64,000 nucleotides of DNA, taken from the sequence record ON286972.1; one strand, written 5' to 3'. A program made the position numbers and the translations under genes. Of this stretch, positions 3,001 to 49,159 are shown piece by piece. Under the pieces are notes generated by a model. That model was given only the letters and a program-made list of their open reading frames with translations, was not told the DNA's origin and ran no database searches. Numbering within the stretch: position 1 is the stretch's first letter; each line of letters opens with the position of its first letter.

Positions 3001-4347
3001 CCAATCGGTCTTAAGGTGTAGTTCATTATCTTTACCAACTACATTATAGTAGTACAATCCAGAAATTTCAGTTTCAACACCCAAATGATCATATGTATAA
3101 CGAACACTTTGTAGGAAGTTTTCGTACATATAGTAATTATAATTACCTAGTTCGATATTATAACCATATACTTTATCAGTGCCGTAATTATAGTTGATTT
3201 TAAAACCAAATAGGGATGAACCAACAAAATTACTTGATGGATAAATTGTAGAATCATTTAATTTAAAACCATCACGGTCATATAATTGGAATTGTGGGAA
3301 TACGTTTACACCAGATTTTGTTTGTGCTCTAATCCAGTTAACACCATTCCAGTACATGGATGTATTTTTATATACATTACCATCACGCACCAAAATAACA
3401 TCACCATTATGTGGCTCACCACTTGGGCGGTCGTCAGTTTCTTCATCTGGGTCCAATGCTAGACCATATGTGCGAGAACCATCTTGCATTTTCTTAATAA
3501 AAACTTTATAAATGCGGTTGTTTTCACCAACGTTACCTATACTAGTGAAAAGAATACGCATACCATCTTGTGGAATAATCCCGTCAATACGAATACCATC
3601 ATTTACGTCTTTTTGGACGATATCTTCTGGTTTAATTGTATCAGAGAAAAGATCCACAACACCACGGAAATGTGTCCCGTAGTTAATTAATTCGATATTT
3701 TTATTGTACTCGATGATTGGTGCTTGTGCACGAATAAAACGAGTATCTTGTGTCATGTCAGCAGTTAGTACTGTTCCATCTTCTAGTGTTTGACCAATAG
3801 TATACCAAAAGTTCTGTAGGGACCATGTGTTTCCGTTATCAGCACCACGTTCCATAACAATAAAGTCAGGAGTTGTGATACCATAACTATTTTTACTATC
3901 CCACAAATAGGAACTATAGTTGGTCATTTTGTTTGGGTTAATTGGCGGTGTCCAAGAATAGAACTTACCAGAAAATAGACGGCTCTCGTTTGAAGTTAAC
4001 GTGCCGTAGTGTTCCATGTAGCCAACCAAATCATCATAAAATTGAAGCGAACGAATGCTTGTGTCATCATTACGAGACACATATGCTGTTGATAATTGAT
4101 ATAGCTGACGTTCAACGGTTGCTTCGTCAAGGAAAATCTTAGCAGATGCAGCAGGAGAACCCATATCACCAATATATCCATCAACGATTTCATTATCCGC
4201 TGGATTGAACCATTGTTGAATTACATCATCACTAACCTTTTGAATGTCTTCTAAGCCTTGCATCCATTCAGGTAATCTTTTAATGAAAAGCTTCTGTTGT
4301 ACTGCTTCTGCCGTTTTAGTTGGTAGAAACTTAAAATTATTAGTCAT
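1..4347 (-). CDS. Very large virion structural protein (N-terminal 1449 codons; runs off the left edge; absent from the ORF track)
   Basis: ATG at 4347 with GGAG SD and upstream CATAAATA. Reads MTNNFKFLPTKTAEAVQQKLFIKRLPEW... and is open in every segment translated by hand (e.g. DGIRIDGIIPQDGMRILFTS, EDRLSKGLVDNSVGTKIIQN, IDGYDLVSATFNYKLPVKNG). Lies next to the baseplate wedge gene. Confidence 0.85.
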   Translation of the reverse strand, partial: MTNNFKFLPTKTAEAVQQKLFIKRLPEWMQGLEDIQKVSDDVIQQWFNPADNEIVDGYIGDMGSPAASAKIFLDEATVERQLYQLSTAYVSRNDDTSIRSLQFYDDLVGYMEHYGTLTSNESRLFSGKFYSWTPPINPNKMTNYSSYLWDSKNSYGITTPDFIVMERGADNGNTWSLQNFWYTIGQTLEDGTVLTADMTQDTRFIRAQAPIIEYNKNIELINYGTHFRGVVDLFSDTIKPEDIVQKDVNDGIRIDGIIPQDGMRILFTSIGNVGENNRIYKVFIKKMQDGSRTYGLALDPDEETDDRPSGEPHNGDVILVRDGNVYKNTSMYWNGVNWIRAQTKSGVNVFPQFQLYDRDGFKLNDSTIYPSSNFVGSSLFGFKINYNYGTDKVYGYNIELGNYNYYMYENFLQSVRYTYDHLGVETEISGLYYYNVVGKDNELHLKTDWVRSKEDSKQFVKQTPQIEHTDMYRVFNTVFEMENFKNPLEGMYAYVTEVDRTYQYYKEERQTYMDWHVISGEGIQSERFNRTFELAQKIIDGKSTEIIEIQVDGVDVTDYTRHVYNNKVQSITLGEDVALKDESVIQIRTYSSTEVPNKELGAYEIPINLQNNPYNDNILYINQSNFTLHFKDIIQKNITSGSVDDFNDYEDRLSKGLVDNSVGTKIIQNEASMLPLMAHSANEDIDLFESVLFMQSEYFRFVNKFNTQMIRLYNENPANFLANNASNIVDEILTIINMGHDNTFPFYYDNVASTSGFIRAFVPPTPQFLGILKAHVPEKATFLNAGSKQSCYNISHTGAITKAYRVINGVDKMDDVIYELENRIFNSIDVIFKDEDYQPKLDASDLFPTPYFRDTEYNDEEKKNLLLRGYINFIATNGISNSSHDYDPNNWMTWNYTGTHYMVNGQQTQIAARGSWRAIYTDQFGTYRPATHPWEMFGFSQRPVWWNQEYEPTAVQVGERDGDVVYVYEALVINEQGNMVPSGLWDVGNEKGDSSTGTILFGARKGQYDKYKRFGTQPFKITKTGKQTASGVDICVIEYIAPEVLGLVYGSLNHRAEPWTYGDMGDMEFTYMNTAMFAYDELLMLFKAKPAQFTNYFWDTRNNTLKTVSGNEPQFLYGDTRLRLNFNSDTIVHGENSTRVIGYQMIVSDYLMYQNKNITTKYGEIVRSSHINVGHKLGGFTKADQLTFTSEATGLISQENQSIGLVRSNNIRNEQMSAIKITWTGSAYQIDGYDLVSATFNYKLPVKNGHKVSLKVDNRNVVHYNEWKNDASIPYGTLMNTFQEVYTFICGYGEYLKQHGWIFEEVDESGIQQDWNTIAKDFLIWSQQQLSTGEFISCTPSAINAKFGTDFGSVQSIAQNSGGVWSLLDDSNQGIRQFEIETSRIGNIFTVRTTEESNKRIALIRLSISSYEHAVIFDDQTIFGDYIYEPTYGAVQELIKLYGYITGSW

Positions 4348-8401: not shown

Positions 8402-8890
8402 TTATACGGATTCAACAATCCTTGCCATTTTTTCAGCACGAGAAGTTGTTTGACGATACCAAGCGGAATCACGCATTTCTTTGCCAGCGGTTTTATAATC
8501 ACCACGACCCAATGCTGCCATTGCTTTCTTAAAGTTCAATACACGAGATTTACCCATTTGGAATACCATCATCCAAAGTACACGTTGTACTTGAATAGGT
8601 GCAGTCATTCCGAATTGATCGTAAATCTCTTTTGCTTCTCTGTATGCATTTAGGGAATCTTTTTGAAGTAATGCTTCAGCTTCAGCTTCCGTTAGCCCTG
8701 CACTGAAATTTTCACCTTTTAGTACTAAGTGACCATATCCAATGGTATCTAGTCCTAGGCTATCTTTATAAACTCTGAATTTACCATTCTTGAAATAACC
8801 TAATTTAGTTTGGAAAGCAATAGTACCTTCAAACTCTTTAATTTCTTTCAAATACTGTGCATCATCAGGTTTAATTTCCCATTTACTCAT
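8402..8890 (-). CDS. T4-type lysozyme (GH24), stand-alone paralog of the gp5 lysozyme domain
   Basis: EG...YKDSLGLDTIGYGHL catalytic E/D/T motif; MVFQMG and SAWYRQT.SRA C-terminal motifs. Confidence 0.9.
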   Translation of the reverse strand: MSKWEIKPDDAQYLKEIKEFEGTIAFQTKLGYFKNGKFRVYKDSLGLDTIGYGHLVLKGENFSAGLTEAEAEALLQKDSLNAYREAKEIYDQFGMTAPIQVQRVLWMMVFQMGKSRVLNFKKAMAALGRGDYKTAGKEMRDSAWYRQTTSRAEKMARIVESV

Positions 8891-8924: not shown

Positions 8925-11588
8925 TTATTGACATGCCTCAATTCTACGAGCCATTAACTCTGCACGACGAGTTGTTTGACGATACCAAGCTGAACTACGT
9001 ATATGAGCAGCAGCACCACGATAATCACCTTTAGCTAAACATCCAAGCATACCCTTGAATTTTTGAACTTTGTATTTGCCCATTTGGAATACCATTTGAC
9101 ATAGTACTTGTTGAGCAATAACAGGTGTTTTTAAATCCCATGCCGCATATATTGATTTGGCATCATTAATTGCTTGCGTACTGTCTCGTACTAATATTGC
9201 TTCAGCTTCTGCTTCAGTTATACCACCAGAAAAATCTTCACCTCCGACAATAAGGTGTCCATATCCAATTGTAGGGAATCCACGGCTATCAATATAACGC
9301 CAGAATTTTCCATTTCTGAAATATCCAAGTGCTGTTTGATATTGGATAGTACCTTCGTGTTCTTTAAGTTCGGATATAAATTGGGAATCACCCGGAGCAA
9401 CTTTCCATCCAACGGCAGTTTTATCAACATTACCTACATTATAATTTTGTTCAACTTTTGGAGCGGTTCCTGCATTTCGAGGCTTACGTTCTCTACGACG
9501 AGGAACATGACGAGAACCACGTTGTGAATAACCAGTTCCAATAGTTCGTATGCGAGTTGATATTACCAATTCATCACTATCAGCAGATGGTCTGACCACA
9601 TCTTTAGGGTTATTTTGTGTTGATGGTTGACCCCCAATTAATGTTTTATTCGCAGCGGCAGAACCCTGACCAGTTACAGTTGTGTAGAATAATCCAGGAT
9701 CAACTGAACCACTAAAACCATAGATATTAGATGAGCGAACTCTTATTTCAAATCGTAATATACCATTAGCAGTTCCTATCACTTGTCCTTTTTCAACAAC
9801 ATCTTTATTGAATAGGTCAGAAGTTAAACCATAGAAAACAGATTTATAACCAGATTTATGCTCAACAATAAGAGCATCACCACTGATACCAACAATCCCA
9901 CCATCTGGTGCAACCACACTTCCACGGGCTTGAATTTCCCATCCACTACTATCACGCTTGGTTCCATTCTCGGTCGTTACACCCTTACCCCAATAACCAT
10001 TCTGGCGAATAGTACCGCTACATGGCATAAGCATATGCAAACCTTCAAACGTCTGCGAATAACCAGTCATTCCTGGTTCAGCCGCCATTAAATCTTGTGT
10101 TTGAACTTCACTTGTCTCTGGGGCATAATTTACAAATTGAATTGCTTCTGTTTCTTGTTGCTCTGCAAGTGTAGGTTGAACATCATTTGCTGGTTGTGGC
10201 TCAACTGGAGATGTTGTACTACCTTGACCACCACCACTTATACCAGGATCAACCCTATCACCGTGGTTTTCTGCATCTTTCCAGTTAGCAATCATATGAA
10301 TGTGGTCATTAAGACCCACTGATGGAGTTTTGAAGTCAGGAGCCATGAATGCAGCACTACCACTATTACCTGCACTATCAACTGTTAGGTTTTGACCACC
10401 ACCACTAATGTTAACGGATGAACCACCAATAACGTTTGCAGAGGATGAACCTTTAATAGATGCAGTTGACCCAGCCGTAATATCAGTACTGCTACCACTT
10501 TGAAGACGTAATGAAGCACCAGTAACCAAACGAAGATCAGCACCAGAATTAATTACAACCTGACCATTGACCTTAGCATCCAAATTACCTACCAATTCCA
10601 GTTTGGTATTTCCACCAACACGAGTATTGAAGTCTTGCCCACTTTCAATATTATAAGAACGACCTGCAACCATGTTAATATCTTGACCTGCACGAATGTT
10701 TATGTTTTTATCACAGTGCATTTCAATATCACCATCGCCAGTGAATTTAATACGAGCCGTGCCATCACGGTTAATTAATAAAACATTACCAGTAGCTTCA
10801 GAAATAAGAAGTTGTGCACCACTACGCGTTTTAATAACAATACCTTCATTCTTACGGGAACCAACACGAGTGTCATTAACTGGGTTGTTAAATTGTGTGT
10901 CTTGGTATCCATCAGGGTCTTGATCCCATGTTGGCTTGGTCAATTCTTCTTCTGTATATCCATCATCAAGAATAAAACTATTACCACGAGGTGTACTCAT
11001 ACCATATACAGTACTGGTTGTTTGACGAGTACTGCTGCGGTTTGCAACACCTGCTTCATCATCGTATAATAAGTTTTGTTTTTTCAATCCTTCAACAGCA
11101 GGAACGTTAATATATTTGTCTTGCATGTCAGTTGTGATTGTGTTACGATCATAATCAGTTACTGGTAATGGCATATCAGTACCATTGTAATTGGTATCCG
11201 CAGTTGCCATTCCAGGAACCATTGTATTCATACGTTGGTCATAAACACATCCAATCCAGTAAGCTTGGAATGTACGTGCTTGTGCAAAAATAACAACAAC
11301 AGTACATCCCACATCTGGTGGAACGGCCCAAAAACCATAACCCTTTGGATATTGTCCATAACTATCTGCACTCGGTATTCCTGGAGTTTTGCCAGCAAAC
11401 GGAGCCATATAAGAAGCTTCAATCCATGAATCTTTAGAGTTTTTATCACTTTGTGAACCTTGTATCCATACTTTTAGCTTACCAGATTTCGTAGGATCAC
11501 GGTTATCCATAACGGTTGCTAATTGTGGATAAGATGGGTCAAAACGACCCAACTGTTCCTTTGCATACTTTTTACTTGTATCTGCCAT
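8925..11588 (-). CDS. gp5: Baseplate hub/tail spike lysozyme (gp5/VgrG-like): OB fold, beta-helix, HxH, M23-like domain, C-terminal lysozyme
   Basis: DPTKSGKLKVWI and GYGFWAVPPDVG OB-fold motifs; TPRGNSFILDD; V/G/S/T-rich beta-helix repeats; DHIH; C-terminal EG...DSRGFPTIGYGH. Confidence 0.85.
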   Translation of the reverse strand: MADTSKKYAKEQLGRFDPSYPQLATVMDNRDPTKSGKLKVWIQGSQSDKNSKDSWIEASYMAPFAGKTPGIPSADSYGQYPKGYGFWAVPPDVGCTVVVIFAQARTFQAYWIGCVYDQRMNTMVPGMATADTNYNGTDMPLPVTDYDRNTITTDMQDKYINVPAVEGLKKQNLLYDDEAGVANRSSTRQTTSTVYGMSTPRGNSFILDDGYTEEELTKPTWDQDPDGYQDTQFNNPVNDTRVGSRKNEGIVIKTRSGAQLLISEATGNVLLINRDGTARIKFTGDGDIEMHCDKNINIRAGQDINMVAGRSYNIESGQDFNTRVGGNTKLELVGNLDAKVNGQVVINSGADLRLVTGASLRLQSGSSTDITAGSTASIKGSSSANVIGGSSVNISGGGQNLTVDSAGNSGSAAFMAPDFKTPSVGLNDHIHMIANWKDAENHGDRVDPGISGGGQGSTTSPVEPQPANDVQPTLAEQQETEAIQFVNYAPETSEVQTQDLMAAEPGMTGYSQTFEGLHMLMPCSGTIRQNGYWGKGVTTENGTKRDSSGWEIQARGSVVAPDGGIVGISGDALIVEHKSGYKSVFYGLTSDLFNKDVVEKGQVIGTANGILRFEIRVRSSNIYGFSGSVDPGLFYTTVTGQGSAAANKTLIGGQPSTQNNPKDVVRPSADSDELVISTRIRTIGTGYSQRGSRHVPRRRERKPRNAGTAPKVEQNYNVGNVDKTAVGWKVAPGDSQFISELKEHEGTIQYQTALGYFRNGKFWRYIDSRGFPTIGYGHLIVGGEDFSGGITEAEAEAILVRDSTQAINDAKSIYAAWDLKTPVIAQQVLCQMVFQMGKYKVQKFKGMLGCLAKGDYRGAAAHIRSSAWYRQTTRRAELMARRIEACQ

Positions 11589-18944: not shown

Positions 18945-18970
18945 AAAGGGAGCCTTAGCTCCCTTTTTTT
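18945..18970. terminator. Bidirectional intrinsic terminator between convergent gp46 and endonuclease VII
   Basis: AAAGGGAGC-CTTA-GCTCCCTTT plus T run. Confidence 0.85.
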
Positions 18971-19446
18971 ATATCTAACATGTTTAATTTGCCGTCCTTA
19001 ATAAGCTTCCTAGCCTGTTTTACACGAGCAGTAGTGTTGCTACCAGGGACAACTCCTAACCCTTCCAGAATCGCGTTTTGCTGCGTTGCTGGGAGCCTTT
19101 TAAACTTATTAACATCCACAGTTAATGCCGTGTGATGAATCACTTGCTCTTCTGGTGGAATATTATTGTTCTTTTCAAGATAATCTGCCAGATTTCTTAG
19201 TACTTCATGAAGAGGTTTATCAGTTAAATGACGCAAGTATCGATTGAAAGAGTTCTGCACCTTACCTTCCCATGCGTTAACCTCATTTTGTAGAACTTCT
19301 CTACAATGCTGGTTTTCGAAGTGATAGTGGTCGAGTACTGGTTTCTTAATCGGTTCCTTGATTATAGGATCAATACCTTTTTGCTTTTTTAATAATTCAT
19401 TTCTGTACGTAGCAGCTTCCTTACTATCTTTAAGTCTTCGTTTCAT
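18955..19446 (-). CDS. gp49: Recombination endonuclease VII-like (Holliday junction resolvase)
   Basis: LDHYH...VNAWEGK matches T4 Endo VII LDHDH...CNAAEGQ; LRNLADYL helix. Confidence 0.75.
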   Translation of the reverse strand: MKRRLKDSKEAATYRNELLKKQKGIDPIIKEPIKKPVLDHYHFENQHCREVLQNEVNAWEGKVQNSFNRYLRHLTDKPLHEVLRNLADYLEKNNNIPPEEQVIHHTALTVDVNKFKRLPATQQNAILEGLGVVPGSNTTARVKQARKLIKDGKLNMLDIKKGS

Positions 19447-19478
19447 AATGTGCCTTAGATCTAAGTTAGTTTATGAAA

Positions 19479-19486
19479 TATTTATG
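19479..19486 (-). promoter_or_regulatory. Late promoter (CATAAATA) for endonuclease VII
   Basis: Lies inside a TTTATGAAATA x2 direct repeat, 33 nt upstream of the start. Confidence 0.5.
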
Positions 19487-19542
19487 AAATACATTCCTAA
19501 GAAATTTTTAAGTACTTTTTTTATAAAAAAGATTAGATATTT

Positions 19543-19571
19543 TGAGACACTTTTAAATTGCGTGCTATAAT
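19543..19571 (+). promoter_or_regulatory. Phage-class promoter TGAGACA-N16-TATAAT pointing into the non-coding island
   Basis: Motif and spacing identical to the other members; GTGC extended -10. Confidence 0.75.
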
Positions 19572-19577
19572 GTTTCA

Positions 19578-20063
19578 TGTAGTACTGACAATCCTGTTGA
19601 ATGCAGAAATGCATATAAATTAGAACCTAATCCACTCGAAAATGTAGAGGGTAGATGAGCAGTTCAACAGTGCGATGAGCAAAAGAAACCCGTTAGATGT
19701 GGGCATATTATGAACCCCTCACGGCGACACGGCTCAATAAAGAACTCCGATAAGCATACAGAGAGTTCCTCGATAGTTCCTCGATAGATGTATAAGGATC
19801 GCACCTTACCAGATTTGCTAAGGGAGTTTGATGATTCATTTCATTAAACAGCCTGAAGTTTGATTGTATAGACTTTCAGGTGAGTGTCAGGATGTTTAAG
19901 ACTGACGACCGTTGCACATGACTGCGATAGAGAGAAACAGAGCAACCCGCTTTCGTTCTTAATATTTTTACAATATAATTACGTTTAAATTTTAAGAAAT
20001 TCGCAATACAATAATACCGATGCCATCAGCGTCAAGAAACAGAGACTTAATTGTCTCTTTTTT
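19578..20063 (+). ncRNA. Candidate structured non-coding RNA (~480 nt)
   Basis: Promoter upstream, terminator downstream, no ORF of 60 aa or more, several nested stems (see findings). Family not recognised. Confidence 0.45.
20041..20063 (+). terminator. Intrinsic terminator
   Basis: AGAGAC-TTAATT-GTCTCT then TTTTT. Confidence 0.75.
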
Positions 20064-20160
20064 ATTATCTTCATTCCCCTGCGGGGGGATGAAATATCCT
20101 CAACAAATCCCGTCAAGTATTAAATCATTTAAAGTTCTTTATAATTATATTAAAATGAAT

Positions 20161-20220
20161 ATGAGTTAACGTAGTTAACGAATATTCTTCAGCTAACGAA
20201 TGAAATGAGTTAGATGAGTT
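20161..20220. repeat. Short repeat/palindrome cluster in an AT-rich tract
   Basis: ATGAGTT x3 (20161, 20205, 20214), GTTAACG x2, TAACGAA x2, GAATATTC palindrome. Confidence 0.6.
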
Positions 20221-20300
20221 CAATATAAATCAAATGAATTCCTTCAAGAATAAATCTTTTAAGATCATAATTTCTTTCATCTACTTTGTAAGTAAAAATC

Positions 20301-20341
20301 CAAAAAACAAAAACAAAAAAAAACCAGCAACAATGTGCTGG
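20301..20341 (-). terminator. Intrinsic terminator after the gp26/gp51-like unit
   Basis: CCAGCA-CATTGT-TGCTGG followed by a long T run on the minus strand. Confidence 0.85.
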
Positions 20342-20354
20342 CTTCTTATGAGTA

Positions 20355-20570
20355 TTAGTGCTTCTCGTTCATCTTCTTTACTTTCTTATTGTATGCCTTA
20401 ATAAGCATATCTCTGTCATTTACTGGCATATTAAGTAGAGTTGCATAATCGACATTATCTACATAAACAGCAGCATCCATAAGGGCATTTTTAATATCTG
20501 ATTTATTCAACTCCATATCATCCAGAAGTTCTTTTATTTCTTCTGGGTTTGAGAAGAGAAGCTGAGATCG
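20355..20570 (-). CDS. gp51-like baseplate hub assembly chaperone segment in the -1 frame of the gp26-like gene (not in the ORF track)
   Basis: Frame is open 20585-20355: ...FFRSQLLFSNPEEIKELLDDMELNKSDIKNALMDAAVYVDNVDYATLLNMPVNDRDMLIKAYNKKVKKMNEKH*. First ATG is only at 20516. TTTTTTC slippery site at 20576-20570. Confidence 0.7.
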   Translation of the reverse strand, partial: RSQLLFSNPEEIKELLDDMELNKSDIKNALMDAAVYVDNVDYATLLNMPVNDRDMLIKAYNKKVKKMNEKH

Positions 20571-21421
20571 AAAAAATGAGTAGGGTCATACTTTAATCCA
20601 GTAAGTTCCCATTGATGCTGACATTCAATACATTCAACTTCCATTGTATGCGATACACCAATCTCTAGTACTTCATCCATTTTCTCTCTGATTTGCTTGA
20701 TCACTTCTTTTGATTGAGTACCTAACCATTCACTTATGAATTTCTTATCTGATACTTCATCACCATCAGGAGTAATTACTTTATCAATAACTCCAGCAAT
20801 CATATCAAAGTTTAGTTGTGCCATGTTTTCAAATACTTCAGAAAACATTTTAATTTTATCATCTTCTGAAATATCAATAGTACTCTCAAGATACTTAGTT
20901 TTTTGTTGTTCAGCTAACATACGTTGAGAAAACTCTGAATATTCTTTCCAAGTAAGTGGTCTGAACTGAAGAGACAAACCATTATTAAGATCAATACTAG
21001 GAATTTCAGTAAAAGATTCTGCCGTTTCCAATAGATAAGAAAGATCACGTTCAAAACGGCCTTCTTTGGAACATGATGGACATACGACATTGACATCATA
21101 ACTGGTTTCTTTGGATGCTAACTTGATAGCAATAAGAATTTGCTCAACATCATTGACAAAAAGCTCATCTGCGTTTAGAATGTTTGGTACACAGTTTTCG
21201 ATAACAGATGACACTGCACTACCATTGAGTAACATATCAGGTGTATTGAGCATCATTTCGTCACGAGCACTACGAGCACAGACACCACATTTAATGCCTT
21301 TGCTCCCCAATACACCATCTTTGTACTGGAAAATGTTGTTAGTGACGAGTTTAGTACTAATTTCTTCGATTTTTGTGTATTTTGCTAACGGGTTCATTGA
21401 CATAATACTTTCTCCATGCAA
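20534..21421 (-). CDS. Baseplate hub assembly protein (gp26-like)
   Basis: ARDEMMLNTPDMLLNGSAV...IENC.P; D.EQILIAIKLAS; CPSC and CIEC; LQFRPLT; ends YDPTHFF. Confidence 0.75.
   Translation of the reverse strand: MHGESIMSMNPLAKYTKIEEISTKLVTNNIFQYKDGVLGSKGIKCGVCARSARDEMMLNTPDMLLNGSAVSSVIENCVPNILNADELFVNDVEQILIAIKLASKETSYDVNVVCPSCSKEGRFERDLSYLLETAESFTEIPSIDLNNGLSLQFRPLTWKEYSEFSQRMLAEQQKTKYLESTIDISEDDKIKMFSEVFENMAQLNFDMIAGVIDKVITPDGDEVSDKKFISEWLGTQSKEVIKQIREKMDEVLEIGVSHTMEVECIECQHQWELTGLKYDPTHFFDLSFSSQTQKK

Positions 21422-44266: not shown

Positions 44267-49159
<4,893 letters not shown>

Follow-up and report, generated by a model that had tools for sequence, protein, structure and literature searches.

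Large, intricately folded bacterial and phage RNAs are rare, and each known class (RNase P, group I/II introns, OLE, GOLLD, ROOL) has turned out to be catalytic or architecturally surprising. The GOLLD and ROOL RNAs of phages, prophages and plasmids (PMC12286853) are large (0.5–0.8 kb), ornate non-coding RNAs of mobile elements in Firmicutes, rumen and lake organisms, with their own expression signals, no partner protein and no known function. Origin transcripts such as ColE1 RNA II (about 550 nt), whose fold decides whether an RNA–DNA hybrid forms, and those of T4 oriF/oriG are promoter-driven RNAs. Jumbo phage PA5oct, which depends on host polymerase, has four ncRNAs defined by RNA-seq (PMC7318152), and the HK022 put RNA is a cis-acting antiterminator. 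The analyses presented here identify one of four copies, in the jumbo phage Escherichia phage A4, of a previously uncatalogued predicted RNA gene of roughly 0.5 kb with its own promoter and an intricate, evolutionarily conserved fold, which also occurs as a single copy in small integrated islands of enterobacterial chromosomes; its function is not known, and its transcription is inferred.

The window (the whole 64,000-nt stretch analysed) is part of the A4 record (ON286972.1, 355,528 bp, genus Asteriusvirus), window position being record position minus 186,000. The element lies within a 908-nt unannotated gap (19447–20354) between the start of the endonuclease VII gene (− strand, 18955–19446) and the end of a small − strand gene that precedes the baseplate hub gene. 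The observation that prompted this work, a promoter-to-terminator unit without ORFs, with a GC-richer core and several stems, was confirmed on re-examination. In particular, a sigma-70-type promoter (TTGAGA/GAGACA, a 16–18 nt spacer and TG-extended TATAAT) at 19542–19571 scores 11 of 12; no ORF of 60 aa or more lies inside 19572–20063, the longest being 46–49 aa; GC is 38–49% across 19600–19950 against 21–33% in the flanks; and a terminator-like hairpin AGAGAC/GTCTCT followed by a T-run is present at 20041–20063. The 11-nt tandem duplication AGTTCCTCGAT x2 is likewise real (19764–19785) but private to this copy, since the other A4 copies lack it and contigs of relatives skip exactly 11 nt at 19764. 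The features of the element, all on the + strand, are as follows.

19542..19571 (+): promoter, with a −35-like TTGAGACA and a TG-extended −10 (TG at 19563–64, TATAAT at 19566–71); the start site is predicted near 19578, which is inferred.
19594..19670 (+): pseudoknot PK1, in which CUGUUGAAU 19594–19602 pairs with GUUCAACAG 19662–19670, the loop of hairpin P3; it encloses P1a (19602–19613) and P2.
19627..19654 (+): hairpin P2 (19627–29/19652–54, 19632–33/19650–51 and 19635–37/19647–49), with a nearly invariant 9-nt loop GAAAAUGUA.
19659..19673 (+): hairpin P3 (GCA/UGC), whose loop is the 3' strand of PK1.
19676..19736 (+): P4 (UGAGC 19676–80 / GCUCA 19732–36), enclosing P5 (CCGU 19690–93 / ACGG 19721–24) and a variable inner hairpin.
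19727..19791 (+): pseudoknot PK2, ACA 19727–29 with UGU 19789–91.
19742..19785 (+): hairpin P7, GAACU 19742–46 with AGUUC at 19764–68 or 19775–79, containing the copy-specific duplication 19764–19774 / 19775–19785.
19826..19848 (+): hairpin P9 (19826–29 / 19845–48); many other copies carry a large insert here.
19850..19881 (+): hairpin P10 (19850–62 / 19869–81), with loop AUUGUA.
19863..20012 (+): pseudoknot PK3, the P10 loop AUUGUAU 19863–69 with AUACAAU 20006–12.
19885..19907 (+): hairpin P11 (GUCAG 19886–90 / CUGAC 19902–06).
19911..20005 (+): 3' domain, with helix C (UGCGA 19923–27 / UCGCA 20001–05), helix B (GAGAG 19930–34 / CUUUC 19950–54), helix D (19957–59 / 19995–97) and pseudoknot PK-A (GUUGC 19911–15 with GCAAC 19942–46 in the loop of B).
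20019..20036 (+): weak hairpin E (20019–23 / 20029–33) and the first conserved box CAGCGUCAAG.
20041..20063 (+): terminator-like hairpin plus U-run, an insert and not part of the universal core.
20070..20116 (+): tail, with hairpin UUCCCC 20074–79 / GGGGGG 20083–88 and the second box CAAAUCCCGUCAAG.
20141..20260 (+): downstream module of unclear status, with a TATAAT-like site at 20141–46, a long hairpin 20157–70 / 20174–87 and short direct repeats AGTTAACGAAT / AGCTAACGAAT.

Lack of covariation among homologues had been named in advance as one outcome that would tell against a functional RNA, and covariation is strong: in 48–121 copies at least 15 helices covary, including four loop-to-strand pseudoknots. 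We aligned 48 copies from 12 phages and then the domains separately. In the 3' domain (19903–20040) 97.6% of cells are paired, helices C and B, the base of helix D and PK-A being 99–100% paired, with 172 double-sided cells against 42 in shuffles, whereas hairpin E is 87.9% paired with no double-sided change; the box CAGCGUCAAG is nearly invariant. In the 5' domain (19588–19745) the figure is 89.7%, with 169 double-sided cells against 54. In both domains 0 of 500 shuffles reach the observed value, and when partners are slid pairing collapses to 27–51% (36–51% in the 3' domain). P2, P3, P4 and P5 are 92–100% paired: P2 has 8 pairs, 7 of them with double-sided changes (92.5% paired); P3 is 100% paired with UA, CG and AU types, 363 of 363 cells being Watson–Crick; and P4 and P5 are 99.6% and 100% paired, with 4 of 5 P4 pairs showing double-sided changes, in agreement with the strand-specific pair counts given below.

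On 121 unique copies the best-supported contact of all is PK3, in which all seven pairs are 99–102 of 102 canonical, each with two or three frequent pair types. PK2 is 118–121 of 121 canonical, and compensatory sets ACA/UGU, AUG/CAU, AUA/UAU and ACG/CGU were seen by eye. P7 has 5 pairs, all covarying, with the highest count of extra pair types; P9 has 4 pairs, all covarying; P10 also covaries; and in P11 the two pairs that align cleanly are 121/121 canonical with four pair types, compensatory variants being visible among the A4 copies. Column by column PK1 appeared only 60% paired because of a shift in alignment register; compared sequence by sequence, however, a copy's 5' strand matches its own loop over a mean run of 7.2 nt against 4.6 nt for other copies' loops, and 35 of 48 copies reach 7 bp or more with many different sequences, such as CUGAAAGG/CCUUUCAG, UCAGUGG/CCACUGA and UCAUAAG/CUUAUGA.

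Of the stems originally proposed, most are real. CTGTTGAA/TTCAACAG is supported, but as the pseudoknot PK1 since its 3' strand is the loop of another hairpin, and GAACTC/GAGTTC, CCTGAAGT/ACTTTCAGG and GTCAG/CTGAC are supported. At the place of TGCA-GAAA-TGCA other copies have hairpins of different sequence (seen by eye). CCTTA...TAAGG is only weakly supported (62–86% canonical with the first TAAGG), pairing with the second UAAGG is rejected, and the alternative long-range pairing CTGACA 19585 / TGTCAG 19885 is not supported.

Across all helices G·U pairs outnumber A·C 568:47, the signature of folding on the + strand, the one that the promoter would transcribe. Folding energy alone does not pick a strand, the + strand folding 2.9 sd better than shuffles (MFE z-score −2.9) and the − strand 2.6 sd better. 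A small translated ORF had been named beforehand as evidence that would tell against an RNA; we find no ORF of 25 aa or more positionally conserved in more than 39 of 121 copies. A degenerate or unusual coding region, or a cluster of small ORFs, thus seems only a remote possibility: several annotators placed short hypothetical CDS over the homologous region in other phages, but these differ in frame and strand between records, indels of 11, 18 and 5 nt separate the paralogues, and substitutions in helices are compensatory.

The promoter belongs to the element. TGnTATAAT is at least 95% conserved in the 48 aligned copies, and a perfect 9-of-9 match occurs in 88 of 121 unique copies, preceded at −35 by TGrrAC(A/G); island copies have the same arrangement. 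The motif resembles the ‘divergent RpoD-like’ class (−35 TGAAACG) described for phages CBB and GAP32 (PMC5259590), although which sigma factor or activator uses it is not known. At the 3' side, conservation does not end at 20063, as had been supposed, but runs at least to 20116 and more weakly to about 20260. The terminator thus lies inside the conserved element rather than at its end: it is present in A4 copies B and C (the A4 copies being termed A–D) and absent from A and D, and 58 of 114 copies have a long segment here, 44 of those with a T-run. On either side lie universally conserved pieces, upstream the box CAGCGUCAAG and downstream the hairpin of six pairs and a second CGUCAR box, CAAAUCCCGUCAAG, ending at 20116. 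The tail hairpin varies only between C-G and U-G, which is tolerated only on the + strand, so that it too is selected as + strand RNA; either termination is partial or this hairpin is a structural arm. Further downstream conservation is partial; the alignment beyond 20120 is too poor for a meaningful column-wise analysis. Whether the TATAAT-like site, the 14-bp-arm hairpin and the two-copy direct repeats belong to the same RNA is not something that we can say. Island copies have long hairpins of different sequence at the matching place.

The unit is not a singleton. A BLAST search of the A4 record finds four copies, all on the + strand, at 65.1, 125.7, 205.4 (the copy studied) and 321.0 kb, 71–80% identical to one another and each in an unannotated gap of 650–900 nt. 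The family is present in 70–72 phage records, all RaK2-like jumbo phages of Escherichia, Salmonella, Klebsiella, Erwinia, Yersinia, Serratia, Pectobacterium, Cronobacter and Xanthomonas hosts, with 4–5 copies in 11 other RaK2-like phages (RaK2: 2). An exact pattern returned no hit in IMG/VR, being too strict, whereas a degenerate pattern from the most conserved block finds the element in IMG/VR and metagenome contigs, nearly all of about 345–378 kb or fragments of such genomes. Depositors left the region blank or covered it with short, mutually inconsistent hypothetical CDS, so that more than 70 deposited jumbo-phage genomes leave an RNA gene family unannotated or hidden under spurious short CDS.

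Multiple copies could also indicate a selfish or site-type DNA element, for example an ORF-less intron-like or MITE-like mobile repeat, a homing-endonuclease target, or a DNA site for packaging or protein binding. In line with this, HNH endonuclease genes lie 1–3 genes upstream of A4 copies A and B, the copies within A4/121Q and within XaC1 cluster together in the tree, and the module has been exchanged between phages and islands. However, we consider this very unlikely, since no group I or II intron, or other Rfam, signal is found even at E up to 10, the copies lie in intergenic gaps and not within genes, orthologous positions are kept across genera, and the strand-specific G·U signature and conserved promoter point to an RNA product rather than a duplex DNA site.

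The same degenerate pattern hits nine bacterial assemblies. A covariance model of the 3' domain (R1) scores them at 85–90 bits and a profile of the whole element aligns them end to end (nhmmer E 1e-85 to 1e-101), on large contigs or complete chromosomes of Serratia fonticola, Serratia sp., Citrobacter amalonaticus, Enterobacter chinensis, Silvania hatchlandensis, Buttiauxella and further Enterobacteriaceae; in addition, 2 of 5,426 complete E. coli genomes have a copy. Island-bearing strains include Citrobacter amalonaticus P55, Serratia fonticola GTA-SR07 and E. coli LR-29-1. Pattern hits in Chthoniobacteraceae and Halovivax are not confirmed by the model and are chance matches, and a ‘Clostridium’ MAG contig, nearly identical to the enterobacterial island copies, is probably misbinned. 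The usual context is a small integrated element in the order integrase (a large serine recombinase of two kinds, or a tyrosine integrase), the RNA in the same direction, a convergent cI-like repressor, a cro-like gene, a 286-aa unknown, a 138-aa protein that resembles the LprI/DUF1311 family by features only, and an invertase. The block from the RNA to the invertase is kept at 80–98% protein identity while the integrase and insertion site change, and the island copies have their own extended −10 promoter and often a terminator. The S. fonticola element instead carries two ParB-like genes between the recombinase and the RNA, with no cI/cro genes found, and in E. coli LR-29-1 the RNA sits in an island of about 10 kb beside ffs, without cI/cro genes, that also carries a PADLOC candidate defence system, PDC-M45. 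A tblastn search of all island ORFs against A4 found only one DUF4326 protein (197 aa, E 7e-16). In a tree of the RNA, island copies fall at three separate places among the phage copies, which points to repeated exchange of an autonomous module.

The copies are spaced more evenly than expected by chance, 43–116 kb between neighbouring copies in seven of the eight genomes (a 33.8-kb gap in XaC1), with P(min gap) of 0.002–0.08 per genome, which a trans-acting gene does not predict. Considering this, it is possible, although doubtful, that the element is a cis-acting replication origin, and this is the main rival to the reading that we favour: the transcript would form a persistent RNA–DNA hybrid downstream and prime leading-strand synthesis by the phage's T4-type replisome, several origins serving a 355-kb genome and the islands carrying one. 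In agreement, all copies lie on one strand, an invariant G6 run follows the body, and downstream lies an AT-rich region with a long hairpin and two-copy direct repeats; further, T4-type origins need only a promoter and an unwinding element, with no initiator protein, which fits the lack of a shared protein. Yet the genomes are related, so the spacing is effectively one observation, and loss of direct repeats that lie close together could also produce it; hybrids and origin activity were not measured, there being no R-loop or marker-frequency data. GC skew follows transcription direction with no inflection at copies A, B or D, a weak test in a phage that replicates largely by recombination; no match was found in 72,556 plasmids (PLSDB); and the near-invariant loops and four pseudoknots go far beyond what known primer RNAs need.

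A second cis-acting role, as a transcription module that modifies the polymerase making it (processive antitermination) or as a leader or attenuator, repeated along a genome that host polymerase transcribes in long + strand arrays, is in our view unlikely. The order is promoter, structured RNA and, in half of the copies, a terminator; three of the four A4 copies sit inside + strand gene arrays; in the islands cro and the following genes have the same orientation as the RNA; and the even spacing would also fit. Against this, the copy studied and its syntenic copies in 121Q, UE-S1, EJP2 and 7t3 point into two − strand late genes, the downstream genes differ among copies, so that there is no constant position upstream of a conserved gene on the same strand, the next gene in the islands is a convergent cI, and known put and EAR elements are 70–120 nt. 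The window copy being antisense to both neighbouring genes fits a stand-alone gene rather than a leader.

We suggest, as a reading only somewhat more likely than not, that 19542 to about 20116 is a self-contained gene for a highly structured RNA of about 0.47–0.54 kb that acts in trans. In this view host sigma-70 RNA polymerase would start at the TG-extended −10 promoter, and the + strand transcript would fold into a compact body of at least 15 helices tied together by four pseudoknots, each formed by a hairpin loop pairing with a distant single strand, with many unpaired nucleotides nearly invariant. Part of the transcripts would end at the optional intrinsic terminator (20041–63) and the rest would carry the tail hairpin; the RNA would then act as an RNA particle, most probably on a component of the enterobacterial host (binding, sequestering or processing), considering that it is carried by unrelated mobile elements, all within Enterobacterales-type hosts, with no protein partner shared between them. 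The four to five copies in jumbo phages would supply dosage early in infection, whereas the single island copy would be expressed from the chromosome. The evidence shows a gene-like module of promoter, folded RNA and optional terminator, kept by selection on an elaborate tertiary fold. Whereas conservation, fold, folding strand, absence of coding, copy number and distribution rest directly on our data, transcription, the transcript ends, action in trans and the target are inferences. A discrete transcript had been set out as a requirement for this kind of gene; contigs assembled from four metatranscriptome or transcriptome runs cover the element, but they come from relatives and also cover flanking genes, one running upstream of the promoter, while four isolate RNA-seq runs, whose reads were not aligned, hold only a 0.14 share of words of the island copy, so these data speak neither for nor against a discrete species. 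Conservation downstream of the terminator is also not explained by a simple promoter-to-terminator gene. The original interpretation, a functional, structured non-coding RNA with its own promoter that matches no standard class, is supported, though it could not take in the paralogues, the spread of the family across RaK2-like phages and islands, or the position of the terminator, and our data do not choose among the regulatory, scaffold and primer roles that it listed.

A more far-reaching possibility, which we hold only tentatively, is that the RNA is a stand-alone, RNA-only module of phage–host conflict or of genome propagation that moves between lytic jumbo phages and chromosomal islands. 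It may be a decoy or inhibitor (or ribozyme) aimed at a host factor, deployed in bulk by jumbo phages and kept by islands that also carry candidate defence genes, or it may be an RNA-defined replication origin of T4-type jumbo phages that small islands copy in order to ride on an infecting jumbo phage; either would be a mechanism without a described precedent. The family links jumbo-phage biology to chromosomal mobile elements and may reveal how these phages start replication or subdue the host, and with a tractable host (E. coli), cultured phages (A4, 121Q, PBECO4, phAPEC6 and others) and an alignment that already holds 121 distinct sequences it is directly open to experiment.

Finally, we compared the element with described RNAs. 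The Rfam scan that had been proposed as a check, with 4,227 Rfam 15 models including GOLLD, ROOL, OLE, HEARO, RNase P, tmRNA, 6S, group I/II introns, self-cleaving ribozymes and riboswitches, gave 0 hits at gathering threshold in the 64-kb window; in 19300–20500 nothing relevant appeared at E up to 10, all hits being far below gathering score, and no family overlapped the element in 13 homologous loci or in the Citrobacter copy at E up to 5. ARAGORN found no tRNA or tmRNA gene in the window. We found no paper describing the family, and a catalogue of more than 8,000 phage structured-RNA candidates holds only motifs of 29–151 nt, so that at most fragments could be listed there. What is new lies in the fold, the copy number and spacing, and the sharing between jumbo phages and chromosomal islands.

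With GOLLD and ROOL the element shares its large size, intricate fold, carriage by mobile elements, own expression signals, lack of a partner protein and lack of a known function; there is no sequence or structure match, the hosts differ (Enterobacterales phages against Firmicutes, rumen and lake organisms), and it occurs at four to five evenly spaced copies per genome. The resemblance is a general one, and whether the element forms a homo-oligomeric RNA-only cage or assembly is not known. With ColE1 RNA II and the T4 oriF/oriG transcripts it shares a similar length, a promoter, a fold that matters, a G-run near the 3' part and several dispersed sites per T4-type genome, but it has far more conserved tertiary structure, no antisense regulator was found, no plasmid in PLSDB carries it and no origin activity has been shown. 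The PA5oct transcripts are analogues at best: that distantly related jumbo phage has four ORF-free, + strand transcripts of 236–619 nt, two of them at 1.2–5% of phage reads depending on the time point, but no homology was detected, R1 giving a best E of 1.55 with none of the hits at the ncRNA coordinates, and the sequences look unrelated. Like HK022 put, the element is a structured RNA just downstream of a promoter and upstream of a terminator in a phage; put, however, is about 70 nt with two stem-loops, whereas here the RNA is about 500 nt and the copy studied points into antisense genes.

The copies of the RNA, which in the A4 record lie at 65.1, 125.7, 205.4 and 321.0 kb, are spaced more evenly than random in every genome examined. 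Gaps between neighbouring copies are 43-116 kb in seven of the eight genomes, with a 33.8-kb gap in Xanthomonas phage XaC1, and P(min gap) is 0.002-0.08 per genome, although the genomes are not independent. In trees of the RNA, the paralogues of the Eneladusvirus, Mimasvirus and Kaldavass phages form orthologous groups by position, whereas in A4/121Q and in XaC1 the copies of one lineage cluster together, which suggests gene conversion or recent re-duplication. In addition, HNH endonuclease genes (A4 record 63881-64189 and 124258-124869, loci L011 and L010, respectively) lie one to three genes upstream of RNA copies A and B of A4; these may be homing endonucleases drawn to a conserved repeat, or this may be coincidence.

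Downstream of the conserved tail, every context has a long hairpin of different sequence, as seen at window 20141-20260, at 4144-4222 of locus L143 and at 20609-20663 of locus L245 (the E. coli LR-29-1 chromosome). In the window its arms are 20157-70 / 20174-87, and the A4 copies also have two-copy direct repeats of AG(T/C)TAACGAAT type. This could be a second RNA domain, a processing site or an origin-like feature. Within the RNA itself, the alignments (A3 and A2) show that a sub-module of the form UACAAUAUAGAUCCGUCC, flanked by A/U-rich strands, recurs at two different places, inside P9 and inside helix D. This sub-module is present in some copies (for example L010, which is A4 copy B, and L016/L033, which are pEa50 copies) and absent from others, as if it were a portable structural insert. 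Further, the XaC1 copies (L047, L054, L059 and L067) and the island copies L139, L142 and L145 carry an insertion of about 45 nt (...CCCGUUUAGUAGUGG...) in the first hairpin, P1a; the other phages lack this insertion.

Elsewhere in the window, three further features were observed, two of them repeats, for which the assignments are only probable, and one a hairpin:

8424-8601 and 8950-9127: two blocks of 53-54 nt repeated 526 nt apart at 74-81% identity, probably a tandem duplication of a gene or domain.
18945-18966: a bidirectional terminator-like hairpin between the convergent gp46-like gene and the endonuclease VII gene.
48961-49124: a coding-type repeat rich in CCAG/ACTCCAG units (periods 9, 30 and 39 nt), probably a Pro/Ala/Thr-rich linker in a structural protein.

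Finally, considering the chromosomal contexts of the RNA, two copies of rof (Rho-binding antiterminator), with identical scores, lie next to the island end in the Serratia fonticola chromosome (locus L147, 4775-5490), and this looks like a target-gene duplication made by integration beside tilS. In the E. coli LR-29-1 chromosome (L245, 15997-26341), an island of about 10 kb lies beside ffs and has an IS3-disrupted tyrosine integrase, the RNA, and a PADLOC candidate defence system, PDC-M45 (dual-OB protein, DUF488, with DUF4326 next to them).
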